Shown in pieces: positions 13,123 to 43,599 of a stretch of 43,599 bases of DNA. The stretch's first letter is position 1, and each line of letters begins with the position of its first letter. The notes under the pieces are model-generated. The model ran no database searches and had not been told where the DNA came from. It saw nothing but the letters and a program-made list of their open reading frames with translations. The DNA comes from Octopus sinensis (taxonomy: Eukaryota): positions 1-43,599 of the forward strand of contig NW_021834977.1 in NCBI RefSeq assembly GCF_006345805.1. Reading direction: 5' to 3'. The translations under genes were made by a program, and so were the position numbers.

Positions 13123-13500
13123 GGATGCACAATGGCCCTGTGGTTAGGGCAGCGGACTCACGGTCGTGGGATCGCGGTTTCGATTCCCAGACCGGGCGCT
13201 GCCAGTGCTTATTGAGCGAAAACACCTAAAGCTCCACGAGGCTCCGGCAGGGTCTGGTGGCGAACCATGCTGTACTCTTTCACCACAACTTTCTCTCACT
13301 CTTTCTTCCTGTTTCTGTTGTACCTGTATTTCAAAGGACCAGCCTTGTCACACACTGTGTCCCGCTGAATCTCTCCGAGAACTACGTTAAGAAGTACACA
13401 TGTCTATGAAGTGCTCAGCCACTTGCACGGTAATTTCAATAGCAGGCTTTGCTGTTGTTCGGATCAACTGGAACCCTAGTCGCGGTAAACGACGGAGTTT
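13123..13500 (+). mobile_element. Second tRNA-derived SINE family (octopus-type)
   Basis: A-box TGGCCCTGTGG and B-box GGTTTCGATTCCC in a tRNA-like head, followed by an unrelated body (GAAAACACCTAAAGCTCCACGAGGCTCCGGC). Confidence 0.75.
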
Positions 13501-13695
13501 CACGATGCATATATTACTATAAGTGATTCATACGACATGCGTTATATGCACTACTAAGTACATAAGTACGTTTATCGGTGCCTGATGAACGTACATGTGT
13601 ACGTGAAACTATTAGTAATATGAAACAGTTATAGCAATATTAGCCTCTCATTAGACGGAGTACTCATTGATTTTTAACACAAATTAATTTCGTAT

Positions 13696-13768
13696 TATAT
13701 ATATATATATATATATATATATATATATATATAATTATATATATATATATATAATATATAATATATAT
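13696..13768. repeat. (TA)n microsatellite at the putative compartment junction
   Basis: Directly visible; last octopus-style feature in the window. Confidence 0.95.
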
Positions 13769-14329
13769 GAGGAAATGAAGAAAATGCTGACAAAATAATT
13801 TAAGTAAGGGAGAGTGTATTTAATTAGGTGAACATTCTTTTTACCGGTTGCGCATTTGTTTAAAAGAGATATTTTCAAGAAAGATTTCGGAATGCAATTT
13901 TTTTTATTATGTAAACAAATATTATGACTACATGTCTTTTAAGAGGAAAATGAGGAAAGTATGGTCAAAGGCTAAAGCAAATCATGGGCTGGGTTACAGT
14001 TTGAAGTTGTACGTATTCACCGGCCAAGTGCCCAGTGTTCTTGCAGTTATGCAAGGGGCGATTTATTACTGCAGGTGGCGATGGTTGATTGCTAATATTT
14101 CGAAATTTACGTCAGAAGTCGATAATCGAGAATCAAATAGAAATAACCCCGCGACAAAAAAATTCTGACACTTAATACATCGTTTATTTTCATTATTAAT
14201 GTTACTAGATAACAACGTTAGAATGCTTATATAATCAATATTTTTAATTATTATAATATTCTAATAATATGTTAATGTTGAGATTAGAGCAGAAAAAACA
14301 AATTTTTTTTATGAAAAAATTCCAGACAA

Positions 14330-15260
14330 AAATGTAAAAAATAACATATTAGTACTGTATATATCTCCTTTTGATTTGAAATAACTTTAAACTCGAGTTT
14401 TTCATCGATTTATCAATTTTTAACATAGTCCATTGAAATTTGATTCCAAATTTGGAGTATTTTCTTTTTGTTGTTCTCTATTTTTTGGTCGAATTTTCTA
14501 TTCCTTTTATTTAGCCCAAATGTGTTAAAAGCATCACACATATCACATTGGATTCATATCCGGAGATTGTGCCGGACAATCAGTAAATTAATTTTATTTG
14601 CAGAAAAATATTTCATTGTTGAAGTATGACAGGGGGCATTGTCTTGCTGAAATATGTAGCTGTTTAGCCCCATTTTTATTGCTAATTTTTTAAGATTGTT
14701 TGCTATAATGTTTATATATTTACCAGAGTTAATTTTTTCTTCAATAAAACATCATGTACCAATGTCAAAATAAGAAAAACATCCCCAGACCATAATTTTG
14801 CCACGTCCACACTTAACTATTGGGACAGAATTTGAATTTTTATAATCATTTGCTATTTTTCTGTATATAATTTTTCTTTTTGGTGCATTATAAACTTCGA
14901 AGGAACACTCATATGAAAAAATGATTGATCTTCATCCTTCATCATTTATACCAACGAATATTTCCGATATTTCATATCTTTTGATTATGTTTTTTTGATT
15001 AAAAATGGTTTTTTCTTTGCTACTCTTCCAAATACACCATTCTTATTGAAATTGCGAGAAATAGTTCGCGGGGAAATTACTTTTTAGTAATTTTTTCATT
15101 TCTACCGCCAGATCTTTAGCGGATTTTGCAAAATTAACTTTAGAAAGTTCGACCAATACTTTAACTTCGTTTGCATCCAGTAATGTCGGTCTTCCAGATC
15201 CACTTAGTCTACAATGGTTTTTCGTTAATGTAGTGTAATATGATAGAGTCTATAATATTT
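14330..15260 (-). mobile_element. Tc1-family transposase remnant
   Basis: Minus-strand motifs RLSGSGRP, IIFSYE, GKIMVWGCF, IFQQDNAP and PAQSPDMNP; many stops; TIRs not identified. Confidence 0.75.
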
Positions 15261-16047
15261 ATTAGACTTGTAAAAAAACTACAATCAATTTATTCAGATA
15301 TTAATTAAACTTCTCCTTCTAGTCGCTACATCCCTCATTCGCAAGGTTATTCAGGTAGGCAAGCCCGCCTCGTTCCCTTCGATGTACTGACAGGCACTGG
15401 GGATGTTGAAGACACTTATTTGGTGATAAATCTGGTTTATTTTTTGTCCAGTTCAAGCGTTCTTTTCCAAGGTTCAACTCTGTTCCTATAAAAAACAATC
15501 ATTGTTTGTAGTAAGTGATTGGTTTGTATAGTGATTGATTGAATGTGTTGTTTTTGGTTTTGTTTATAGAATGAGGCAGTGACTGCGTGAAAATCTGACA
15601 ATTCTGGGAAGAAAAATAAAAAAATGAAATTCCCGAAATTAATGGGAAAAAATTATGTTTTCCTACATCATCTGCGTAGAGAGAGAATTCAGCACTCTTA
15701 ATAGTATGATCGAAAAAAAGAACAAACTAAACATAGAAGAAAGAGGATAAATTAGAATTACAATTACGAAAAAAGTAAATTTGAAGTTTTTGACGTACCC
15801 GGTTTTTGGAATAACGACCCAAAAAATTACATAAGTCATTTTATTTTCTACTGAAAATAGTTATAAAATAAATTATATCATGTTTAAATAATTTCTGAAG
15901 CTATTTCTGATTTTGGTGTATCTCACAAAACCTATTAAGCAATGTAATTTTCTTTTCTTTTGAATCATAAAAAACTTTCCTCCCATTCTTTTTTGAATCC
16001 CCTATTTTCTTGTACTATAATACGATACTGTTTAGGGACAACAGACA

Positions 16048-16565
16048 TTAGACAATTTTCCACGTGAATGAATTGAAATTTAATTTTATAACAATTATTA
16101 AAATTTTTTTAATCCAATCATTTATTTTTGCAGGGCCGCATTTAAGAATTACTGCTTTTGATCTTCTCCAGTGCTAAGTTTTCGATCGTGAGAATATAAC
16201 AGAGGTTAAAGCTGTCAGCCTCAATTACGCGCTGAGCAGGTTTTTGAGGTTCCATAGTATTCGGTTCAGAAACATTCTTGGTTTTAATGGGAGCTCTTTT
16301 TTGTCCTTTTGCGCTAACTTTCGGTACCATATCCACAAAAATAGTCTTTAAAATAAATTGACCTTTTATCCAAAGAGCTAAAATTAATTTGGAATTAAAA
16401 GTGAAAATAGTTCCAACCAGTCTTTACTATAATTTCCTGAATCGGTACCTCAAATAGTAGTTCTTTTTTTTAAATCCACTTCTTTTGACGTCCTGAACTC
16501 AACAGTACAATTGGTACCTCTAATAGACTTCCCTTTGGAATGTTCTCTAGTTTGGAAAAGATCAT
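16048..16565 (-). CDS. Possible small spliced gene with PH-domain-like motifs (model not resolved)
   Basis: ATG at 16565, 130 bp after the POC1 stop. A 25-nt GT-AG intron joins KGSLLE|DVKRSGFKKKNYY; downstream CGYGTES and ILKCGPAKINDWIKKI resemble PLC-type PH features. No single consistent frame could be built. Confidence 0.25.
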
Positions 16566-41707: not shown

Positions 41708-42069
41708 TTAGAGTGTTTTTCCACAGTACTTTGAATAGTCTGGTGATATTTGTAAAAGTTGTTTTAGAATAATTATCATTGATAACTAATTCTATGAAAT
41801 TTATCCTGTTCAAGGAGACACCAATTTAATGTTTACGACATTTTAGCAACCATTCGATATTCAATAGTTGTTGTCGGTGATCCTTCTAAAATAATCCCCA
41901 AGACTGCCAGTCAATTGGTCGCCAAAAACCATTTAACTATCAAATAAAGAATGATCAATAACCAAATTATGTGAAGGTGTGTCGTATAACTTAATAGTTT
42001 GGTCAATTTATTCAGGTGCTCATAGACAACCCCAAATCAACAAGTTTTATGAGATTTTGTATCAACGGT

Positions 42070-42420
42070 ATAATTATTTATTGAAATGGCCCAACCAAGA
42101 TGCCCTCCAATGAACACTTGTTCGCCTCTAAATGACATGACATGAACACACAGCAGGGAAAAATGGCTTGGATTGGATGCCACTCCTTCTCTGTATGTAC
42201 CCATATGACACCCGTAAATATAAGAATTCCATTAGTTCTGTGATACACGCTGTATTGTACAAAAGATGTTTGTCTCCTTCCGAAAGACAACTTTGGACTG
42301 AATGTTTTTTGATCAATTGTGGGTGTCGAACTCCGAGAAGATGCACTCCAGCAATCCTCGCTGACTAAATGTCAGGATAAGACTGGAACCCCAAAGACTG
42401 AGGAAACAGTTTAATATCCT
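42070..42420 (-). mobile_element. 3' end of an R4-like element (third copy)
   Basis: GACTAAATGTCAGGA.AAGACTGGAACCCCAAAGACTGAGG.AACAGTTTAATATC is nearly identical to 30600-30659. Confidence 0.6.
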
Positions 42421-42527
42421 TTAGATTTGTTTCCCGAATGATTTGTAGTTTCCTAAACGGTTTGCTGTCACCTCTCATTCTATTTTAATTAATAATAATA
42501 AGTCCTCAAAATATACGCTAAATTAAT

Positions 42528-42900
42528 TTAAAAATAGTTGGAATACATTAGAGATCCGAGTTTCTTTACTTTTCTCCAATGTTCGTCCAGCTTAGACTTC
42601 TGTCTTGCTAGTTCAGTAAATTCTGTTTTCTCCATATTTACATTGAGGAACCACTCAGCAAGTCTATTTGGCATCACCTCCAATAGGCTTTCCAGAGCGT
42701 CCTTGTCTGAAGAAATAAAATCCACGTCATCCGTGTATGCCACCACATTGATCTTTCCTTCATAGTATGGTTTTAGTTCTCCCAATGCAGATTCCAGATA
42801 TATGACAAACAGTATAGGAGATAACGGATCCCCTTGAGGTGTTCCAGATGTTGTTTCAAATGGTTTAGAGCACTTGTCTCGTACCCTGACTGATACACAT
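42528..42900 (-). mobile_element. Non-LTR (APE-type) reverse transcriptase fragment
   Basis: PFETTSGTPQGDPLSPILFVIYL, AYTDDVDF, LNVNMEKTE, VKKLGSL. Confidence 0.85.
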
Positions 42901-43384
42901 TTCTTGATCTTCTTAATATTCGATCTTTCCCGACCAAGTTTTTCTTTGATGTGCTTGTCCTCCGTATTTAAATATTGTAGCCAAATAGATTTTTGTTTCT
43001 TAGCAAGGAGCGATATCTCTGTTGTTCCATTTGGTGATGTGGTAACCATTTCTGTGTCCATGAGCTGTTTCTCCGCTGCTCCTCGTATTGATTCCTGGAT
43101 TTGTCCCCAGAGTTTGGGGAATGGTTGATTTTTTTCCACACTTCCCAAATACGTATAAGGCATTTCCTATAGTTATCTCCCATTTGTTGTATTGAGAGTC
43201 CATTTAGGTCAAGTATTCTCTTCCTAAGGATATCCTGCCTCCCTTGGATATTTGTTTTGTTTTTGTTTAGATGTTTATTTAGTGATCTTCTTGCAATGAC
43301 CATTTTGTGGTCACTGTCAATGTATGACCCACCATATGACCTTGCGTCAGTGAAAAGAGCTTTGTCTTTAGATCGACAGATTAT

Positions 43385-43599
43385 GTAAAATTTTTATGTA
43401 CATTTTGGAAAAGATAAAATGTTTTCTATGCTTAAGGGAAAGATATATGGTGCAACTCGAGAAGAGATTAGCAAAATAATTGAAAAATGTGCTTATTGTC
43501 AGGTATTTAGTTAAATTATTCGATTCAGTCCAAAAAATTGCTACCTACAATGCCGGTTATCACTCCTATTATTGCAAGAGGCCCAAGAGATTGATACAT
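43385..43599 (+). mobile_element. N-terminal HHCC zinc domain of a second intron-containing integrase (runs off the window)
   Basis: VHFGKDKMFSML...IIEKCAYCQ|26-nt intron 43502-43527|SKKLLPTMPVITPIIARGPRD*YI; overlaps the PIIA..RDRYI motif that begins the 21426 copy. Confidence 0.7.

Follow-up and report, generated by a model that had tools for sequence, protein, structure and literature searches.

The unplaced contig C11448 of the Octopus sinensis genome assembly (NW_021834977.1; 43,599 bp, 0 N) poses the question whether it holds the DNA of one genome or of two and, in the latter case, to which organism the second genome belongs and how both came to lie in one contig. This contig was analysed in its entirety and is called the window in the following; it belongs to an assembly of 13,516 contigs and 2.72 Gb. 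A previous sequence-only reading had proposed that octopus-like DNA on the left is joined to the DNA of an animal with very short introns, most likely a dicyemid, on the right. Our analysis leads to a closely related picture: with a probability of about 0.88, C11448 is a chimeric contig consisting of a copy of a part of octopus chromosome 1 (C1) and of dicyemid nuclear DNA, which were joined by an assembly error.

The presence of two genomes is apparent from the distribution of matches within the own assembly and agrees with the earlier proposal. About 118 of the 143 matches of left-side repeats are located on the chromosome-scale contigs C1-C26, whereas none of the 196 matches of the right side falls on C1-C30. 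All of the latter lie on unplaced contigs (C500, C8694, C8595, C8223, C9497, C6303 and others), some of them longer than 500 kb, and the unplaced contigs matched by left-side repeats and those matched by the right side form disjoint sets. Close copies of the right side (positions 13861-43599), which appears as dicyemid-type contaminant DNA, were found on C500 (96-99% identity), C8694 (99%) and C12074 (~90%).

The short interspersed nuclear elements (SINEs) are distributed in the same manner. By self-BLAST of the window, one host SINE family was detected in six copies or fragments (659-895, 892-991, 3756-3950, 3989-4120, 7056-7208 and 9701-9841), and this family is also present on C2, C4, C11 and other chromosomes. 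A second SINE-like repeat of about 395 bp (13104-13498) has at least 35 copies with 87-90% identity on C1-C26 and some on unplaced contigs of host type. Thus, the six SINE copies noticed before were recovered, and seven elements are present in all; for both families, many copies with 80-90% identity occur on chromosome-scale contigs. No copy of either host SINE was detected by self-BLAST in the 29.7 kb of the right side (Poisson P = 3e-7 at the density of the left side), as the sequence-only reading had stated. Furthermore, the tetranucleotide frequencies of right-side chunks correlate with 0.87-0.96 among each other, in comparison to 0.67-0.86 between left and right.

The transposable elements of the right side constitute a different set, as had also been supposed, with Pfam domains of the RVT_1, rve, hAT and DDE_1 types. 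They comprise three reverse transcriptase (RT) remnants, an integrase, hAT and pogo-like/DDE_1 remnants, and a high-copy element bearing tandem repeats. A retrotransposon remnant on the plus strand (19310-22181; RT at 20126-20746, RVT_1 E = 1e-11; integrase core at 21549-21809, rve E = 5e-17) has copies with 86-93% identity exclusively on unplaced contigs. The same applies to the high-copy element (31307-32406), in which Tandem Repeats Finder revealed units of 120, 102 and 93 bp and which occurs in at least 25 copies with 94-98% identity, one of them on C8223.

The left side (positions 1-13860) is octopus DNA and represents a redundant copy of C1 (~73,263,220-73,277,086, minus strand), as judged by identity, the spacing of 40-mers and the repeats. 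Window and C1 were compared by alignments and by look-ups of exact 40-mers, and both are collinear from position 40 to 13,860 with about 98-100% identity. Complete identity refers to the 2 kb tested for it, in which 2001 of 2001 nucleotides agree (window 9000-11000; C1 minus strand near 73.266 Mb). The exact 40-mers at positions 40, 5300 and 7700 recur in C1 with unchanged spacing (5260 and 2400 bp), and C1:73263194-73264084 is 98% identical to window 13000-13885 over 886 bp. The long microsatellites noticed on this side were detected by Tandem Repeats Finder as (TTA)50 at 4631-4783, (TA)40 at 11838-11915 and (TA)37 at 13696-13768; the last one lies within the host part and is present in the C1 copy, too. 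Transposon open reading frames (ORFs) are the only coding features identified on the left side, among them a Ty3-like RT/RNase H ORF (1995-2453; Pfam). The introns of 1.4-2.4 kb that the sequence-only reading had named for this side could not be confirmed.

The sequence-only reading had placed the switch between the two genomes at a (TA)n tract. This has to be corrected, because the (TA)37 tract and the following 92 bp are octopus sequence, which is present in C1 as well. According to a three-way alignment, the window follows C1 through ...GCGCATTTGT (position 13,860) and then the unplaced contig C12074 with about 90% identity. The actual switch is therefore located at ~13,861, and about 92 bp separate it from the tract on its left. 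It can be resolved to a zone without Ns at 13,861-13,885, over which the ends of the BLAST matches overlap and in which the two source sequences show a short, imperfect similarity. Beyond the breakpoint, C1 continues with an octopus (TATG)n microsatellite, and C12074 carries a sequence unrelated to the window to the left of it. The junction was found in no other contig of the assembly, and sequence of C1 from beyond the breakpoint was found nowhere in the window.

The genes of the right side are those of an animal (bilaterian), with an ETS domain, the centriolar protein POC1, a MAP4K kinase with a CNH domain, and 2-aminoethanethiol (cysteamine) dioxygenase (ADO), as seen with Pfam. The reading frames of ADO, POC1 and the kinase are intact. 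The micro-introns reported by the sequence-only reading are present: 16 GT-AG introns were mapped in the MAP4K-like and POC1 genes, with lengths of 23-46 nt and a median of 26 nt, and 14 of the 16 are shorter than 30 nt. Mapping was done by enumeration of GT-AG candidates anchored on invariant protein motifs and by direct reading of the sequence. Several motifs are split by introns and become intact only after their removal (GTYGTVWK|AIH, KL|ADFG, GTPYW|MAPEV, YDGR|CDIWSLGIT and NWVRSA|SFSPD).

The MAP4K-like gene encodes a STE20 kinase and is located on the plus strand (24990-27250, ends partial). It was recognised by its motifs and by the Pfam domains Pkinase and CNH, the Pkinase matches of single exons being weak and below the curated cutoff. 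Its nine introns lie at 25062-25086 (25 nt), 25144-25189 (46 nt), 25235-25257 (23 nt), 25388-25418 (31 nt), 25481-25508 (28 nt), 25600-25627 (28 nt), 25701-25724 (24 nt), 25783-25809 (27 nt) and 25865-25890 (26 nt). The POC1 gene on the minus strand (16696-18081; Pfam WD40 and splice mapping) encodes WD40 repeats and a C-terminal coiled coil. Its seven introns are located at 17910-17886 (25 nt), 17793-17768 (26 nt), 17658-17631 (28 nt), 17559-17536 (24 nt), 17311-17286 (26 nt), 17151-17126 (26 nt) and 16801-16777 (25 nt). The first coding exon of POC1 was not found in the window; since the first mapped exon lacks a start codon, the initiator ATG probably lies further upstream, in a very short exon that is separated by another micro-intron (18081-18200, minus strand).

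POC1 allows a direct comparison with the host, since the octopus possesses its own POC1 gene on C3 (C3:137938897-137947086), from which two exons lying 8 kb apart were obtained. The spliced product of the window gene (401 amino acids) is 54-60% identical to animal POC1A proteins over the WD40 part, and near-identical copies of it occur only on the unplaced contigs C500 and C12074. The two host exons share 78% and 61% identity with the POC1 of the limpet Patella, in comparison to 61% and 57% with the window protein. All four exon boundaries that were compared coincide between the window gene and the octopus gene; the introns at these positions have a length of 24-28 nt in the window and of kilobases in the octopus. 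Therefore, the window gene retains ancestral intron positions. In a maximum-likelihood tree, the POC1 proteins of the window and of C12074 form a clade with 100/100 support, away from the molluscs. With 2.27 substitutions per site, its stem is longer than any other in the tree, that of the fungi included. The gastropods group together, and the octopus fragment groups weakly with a bivalve, a placement that derives from 77 residues and is accordingly weak. A grouping of the window POC1 with the cephalopod orthologue, which would have spoken against a dicyemid origin, was thus not observed. Protein searches with ADO, POC1 and the POC1 of Patella revealed neither a Dicyema protein nor a cephalopod POC1 among the matches.

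These observations also bear on the possibility that the right side does belong to the octopus and stems from an uncommon compartment of its genome, poorly assembled and for instance lineage-specific or germline-restricted, which lacks SINEs by chance. Such a view could appeal to the genes annotated by NCBI as those of Octopus sinensis and to GC and CpG values that equal those of the host flank. However, POC1 is a single-copy gene, and the window carries a second, highly divergent version of it beside the normal host gene on C3, with introns of 24-28 nt instead of kilobases at the same positions. In addition, the right side shares no repeat family with any of the 30 chromosomes, and 18S genes of dicyemid type occur on contigs linked to it. 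An origin from an octopus compartment is thus extremely improbable.

The 18S genes were searched for in the assembly with published dicyemid amplicon sequence variants (PMC12953835, supplementary file 3). The best copy of dicyemid type lies on the unplaced 16.5-kb contig C1618 and shows identities of 93.4% and 94.8% to two dicyemid types, between which the identity is 93.1%. The octopus 18S gene on chromosome 8 reached 68.6% identity and contains a V4 expansion of about 330 nt, which is missing from the dicyemid-type copies. Further copies or fragments of dicyemid type are scattered over large contigs without ribosomal DNA (rDNA) character, namely C8223 (175701-176120), C7755 (240902-241047), C8702 (408982-409096), C12762 (479141-479256), C8845 (221298-221657) and C8694 (84038-84128 and 203513-203653); another one is present on C1794. 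Three of these contigs are indirectly connected to the window. C8223 carries a dicyemid-type 18S sequence (92-93%) together with the repeat of window positions 31.4-32.4 kb at 95% identity; this 18S copy seems to be a pseudogene, since it shows a V4 deletion and several C-to-T changes. C8694 matches window 23,663-28,000 with 99% identity and holds 18S-like fragments, and C1794 contains two window repeats besides its 18S copy or fragment.

Taken together, the right side is very probably dicyemid DNA, because it carries micro-introns, because its POC1 forms a long branch apart from the host copy and because dicyemid-type 18S sequences occur on unplaced contigs. The dicyemid origin suggested earlier is thus supported by the median intron length of 26 nt, the GC content of 36.0%, the dicyemid-type 18S in the assembly and the POC1 comparison. 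Among animals, introns below 30 nt are known only from Dicyemida and myxobolid myxozoans (PMC13644364), and the median intron length is 27 nt in Dicyema sp. compared to 57 nt in the orthonectid Intoshia (PMC6543705). The genome of Dicyema japonicum from the renal sacs of O. sinensis has a GC content of 36.7%, 49% repeats and many RT copies (PMC6736024); the GC content of the right side is 0.360 over 29.7 kb. The right side of the window resembles the assemblies of D. japonicum (Lu et al. 2019, PMC6736024) and Dicyema sp. (Zverkov et al. 2019, PMC6543705) in several features, i.e. the host O. sinensis, a GC content of about 36-37%, the abundance of repeats and of RT copies, intron lengths around 26-27 nt, intron positions conserved with other animals and fast-evolving proteins with long branches. 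This comparison is drawn on features and not on sequence identity to those assemblies. In contrast to the Dicyema assemblies, which were obtained from purified parasites, the window copy stems from a long-read assembly of the host.

Other co-sampled organisms with tiny introns were considered as the source of the right side, among them chromidinid ciliates, which inhabit the renal sac, myxozoans and other parasites. The protein searches gave no direct dicyemid match for the window's own sequence, and ciliates, microsporidia and myxobolids likewise possess introns shorter than 30 nt (PMC13644364). The gene content argues against ciliates and microsporidia, since an animal-type POC1 and MAP4K are accompanied by ETS genes. 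ETS-domain genes are known from animals only. Furthermore, the standard genetic code yields long ORFs on the right side, and rDNA of dicyemid type, the sole foreign type that was searched for and found, is located on contigs sharing window repeats. Myxobolids are parasites of fish and annelids, which speaks against them as well. Such an organism other than a dicyemid is therefore improbable.

How the dicyemid DNA came to adjoin octopus DNA is the remaining question. As far as can be read from the assembled sequence, an artefact of the assembly almost certainly accounts for the join. The left side duplicates a locus that is assembled without a break on chromosome 1, and since C1 runs on into octopus DNA across the breakpoint, the join is best read as a chimera. 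The contig has a single junction and ends at position 43,599 within foreign DNA, in an RT ORF; neither a second insertion junction nor resumed host sequence was found in the window. The artefactual join, which the sequence-only reading had offered as one of two options, thus gains from the duplication of C1, from its uninterrupted continuation and from the fact that the junction is unique to C11448. Most probably, a dicyemid mesozoan lived in the renal sacs of the sequenced animal, so that its DNA would have been co-extracted and co-assembled with that of the host. At ~13,861, an error in a long read or in the assembly would then have stitched two molecules together. The simplest mechanism would be a chimeric long read that seeded a small contig in a region of low coverage. 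The dicyemid side itself seems to behave as an ordinary piece of a dicyemid genome, with intact genes, introns of about 26 nt and transposons of its own.

Alternatively, at least 30 kb of dicyemid DNA could have been integrated into one haplotype of chromosome 1 at ~73.263 Mb, in the germ line or somatically; C11448 would then be the allele bearing the insertion and C1 the empty allele. The clean base-to-base switch without Ns would fit such an event, as would the short imperfect similarity at 13861-13885, which microhomology-mediated joining could leave, and the left flank, which is nearly identical to C1 in the manner of an allele. However, a real integration is opposed by the single junction of a contig that ends in foreign DNA and is itself unplaced. 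The foreign part has intact genes and not one host SINE in 29.7 kb, in comparison to seven in the 13.9 kb of the left side, and thus shows no signs of residence in the host genome, although a very recent insertion would still fit. It also recurs with 96-99% identity on other unplaced contigs, and the matched end of one of these (522 kb) gives no hint of host sequence. As the assembly holds free dicyemid DNA including rDNA, a chimera is the far simpler explanation, and a real integration is very improbable.

Insertions of Wolbachia in insect and nematode chromosomes are genuine symbiont-to-host integrations. Real inserts have two junctions, a read depth at the level of the host and are present in tissue free of the symbiont; usually they decay or receive insertions of host transposons. 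C11448 resembles such integrations in the tens of kilobases of symbiont DNA abutting host DNA, but differs from them in having one junction and no host SINE insertions. The classic case of foreign DNA co-assembled in a host genome is reportedly the controversy about horizontal gene transfer (HGT) in tardigrades. The window shares with contaminated or chimeric host assemblies that the foreign contigs are unplaced, that foreign genes are named after the host and that there is one junction between host and foreign DNA, each side continuing differently elsewhere. What sets C11448 apart from them is that its contaminant is an animal, which has transposons of its own and the same GC content as the host, so that screens based on GC or centred on prokaryotes would miss it.

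Some points weigh against the interpretation as a chimera of octopus and dicyemid DNA. Neither the GC content (0.36 on both sides) nor the ratio of observed to expected CpG (0.93 versus 0.89) changes between left and right. The connection of the window to the contigs with 18S sequences is indirect and runs via repeat families that both have in common and via a sister contig of 99% identity. As none of the protein searches gave a Dicyema sequence, the assignment to the taxon rests on intron size, host, composition and the rDNA of linked contigs, and not on identity to D. japonicum. The artefact is deduced from the assembly, and an empty site on C1 would also be expected of a heterozygous real insertion.

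Most likely, the junction itself does not reflect biology, and the value of the finding lies in the curation of assembly and annotation and in the mining of dicyemid data. If the junction were real, it would represent a transfer from animal to animal and from parasite to host, caught almost as it happened and with intact genes. The contamination appears to extend beyond C11448: 51 unplaced contigs share sequence with the right side and sum up to at least 9.97 Mb, calculated from the known length or the highest matched coordinate of each contig under the assumption that each is wholly foreign. At least 51 contigs, with about 10 Mb or more, thus appear to belong to the same dicyemid contaminant. 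Since GC is the same in host and parasite and CpG is similar, composition-based screens miss this contaminant, and GC-coverage 'blob' screens would separate it by coverage only. The literature searched contained no mention that the O. sinensis assembly includes dicyemid sequence.

On these contigs, the gene models of NCBI carry octopus names ('ADO-like', 'POC1A-like [Octopus sinensis]'), and the sole database relative of the window ADO found by protein search is the NCBI model '2-aminoethanethiol dioxygenase-like [Octopus sinensis]'. The ADO gene of the window is an uninterrupted ORF of 204 codons on the minus strand (24015-24629; Pfam PCO_ADO E = 3e-24). The annotated ADO (193 amino acids; window 24015-24641, minus strand) leaves this ORF after '...PPYESD' near the C-terminus and ends in unrelated residues. 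Likewise, the annotated POC1 of C12074 is only 89% identical to the spliced window product, although the exons score nearly alike. Automatic gene models therefore mis-splice the introns of about 26 nt on these contigs. Parasite genes filed as octopus genes can pollute orthology sets, counts of gene families and HGT screens in cephalopods. Conversely, the contigs represent long-read dicyemid sequence, in part in pieces of more than 500 kb, which can be mined for a group with a draft genome of 67.5 Mb.

Beside the genes described above, sister copies of genes with a single-copy appearance (window 23663-33700) were found with about 99, 96, 92, 90 and 86% identity on C8694, C500, C8595, C12074 and C7512. 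Since the copies fall into these different levels of identity, they suggest that the sequenced octopus contained dicyemids of more than one species or haplotypes that have diverged from each other. On C12074 (26,076 bp), the first 1,938 bases (minus strand) match window 13861-16178 with ~90% identity, and bases 24547-23165, near the other end, match POC1 (window 16699-18081). The two ends of C12074 thus adjoin in the window, as would be expected of a circularly permuted or tandemly repeated unit. Thousands of 'circular' contigs were reported for the Dicyema assembly (Zverkov et al., PMC6543705).

Scans of the window for tRNA genes and Rfam families gave no hit. The NAV/UNC-53 gene named by the sequence-only reading could not be confirmed; the ORFs on the plus strand at 28030-29900 gave no more than a weak match of P-loop type to NPHP3_N (E = 1.7e-4) and have copies on the unplaced contigs C500 (96%), C8595 (92%) and C7512 (86%). 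Among the transposons, a pogo/Tigger-like DNA transposon remnant is located on the plus strand at 34016-35999, with a borderline DDE_1 match on 35359-35766 (E = 1.3e-4), and a hAT-family transposase remnant at 39921-41147 on the same strand (Dimer_Tnp_hAT E = 7e-7). RT ORFs of the non-LTR (long terminal repeat) type occupy the contig end on the minus strand (42528-43393; RVT_1 E = 1.4e-19).

The ETS gene noticed on the right side was verified with PF00178 (E = 2.9e-16), and two copies are present on the plus strand. In the first (36371-37026; Pfam Ets on 36574-37026, E = 3e-4), the domain is split over two frames owing to either a frameshift or a micro-intron. The second (38477-38928) possesses the full ETS domain in one exon and yielded the E-value given above, covering 79 of 81 profile positions. 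Both paralogues are thus arranged in tandem (36371-38928), and the RT fragment that separates them lies on the minus strand (37914-38360; RVT_1 match below the curated cutoff, E = 1e-4).

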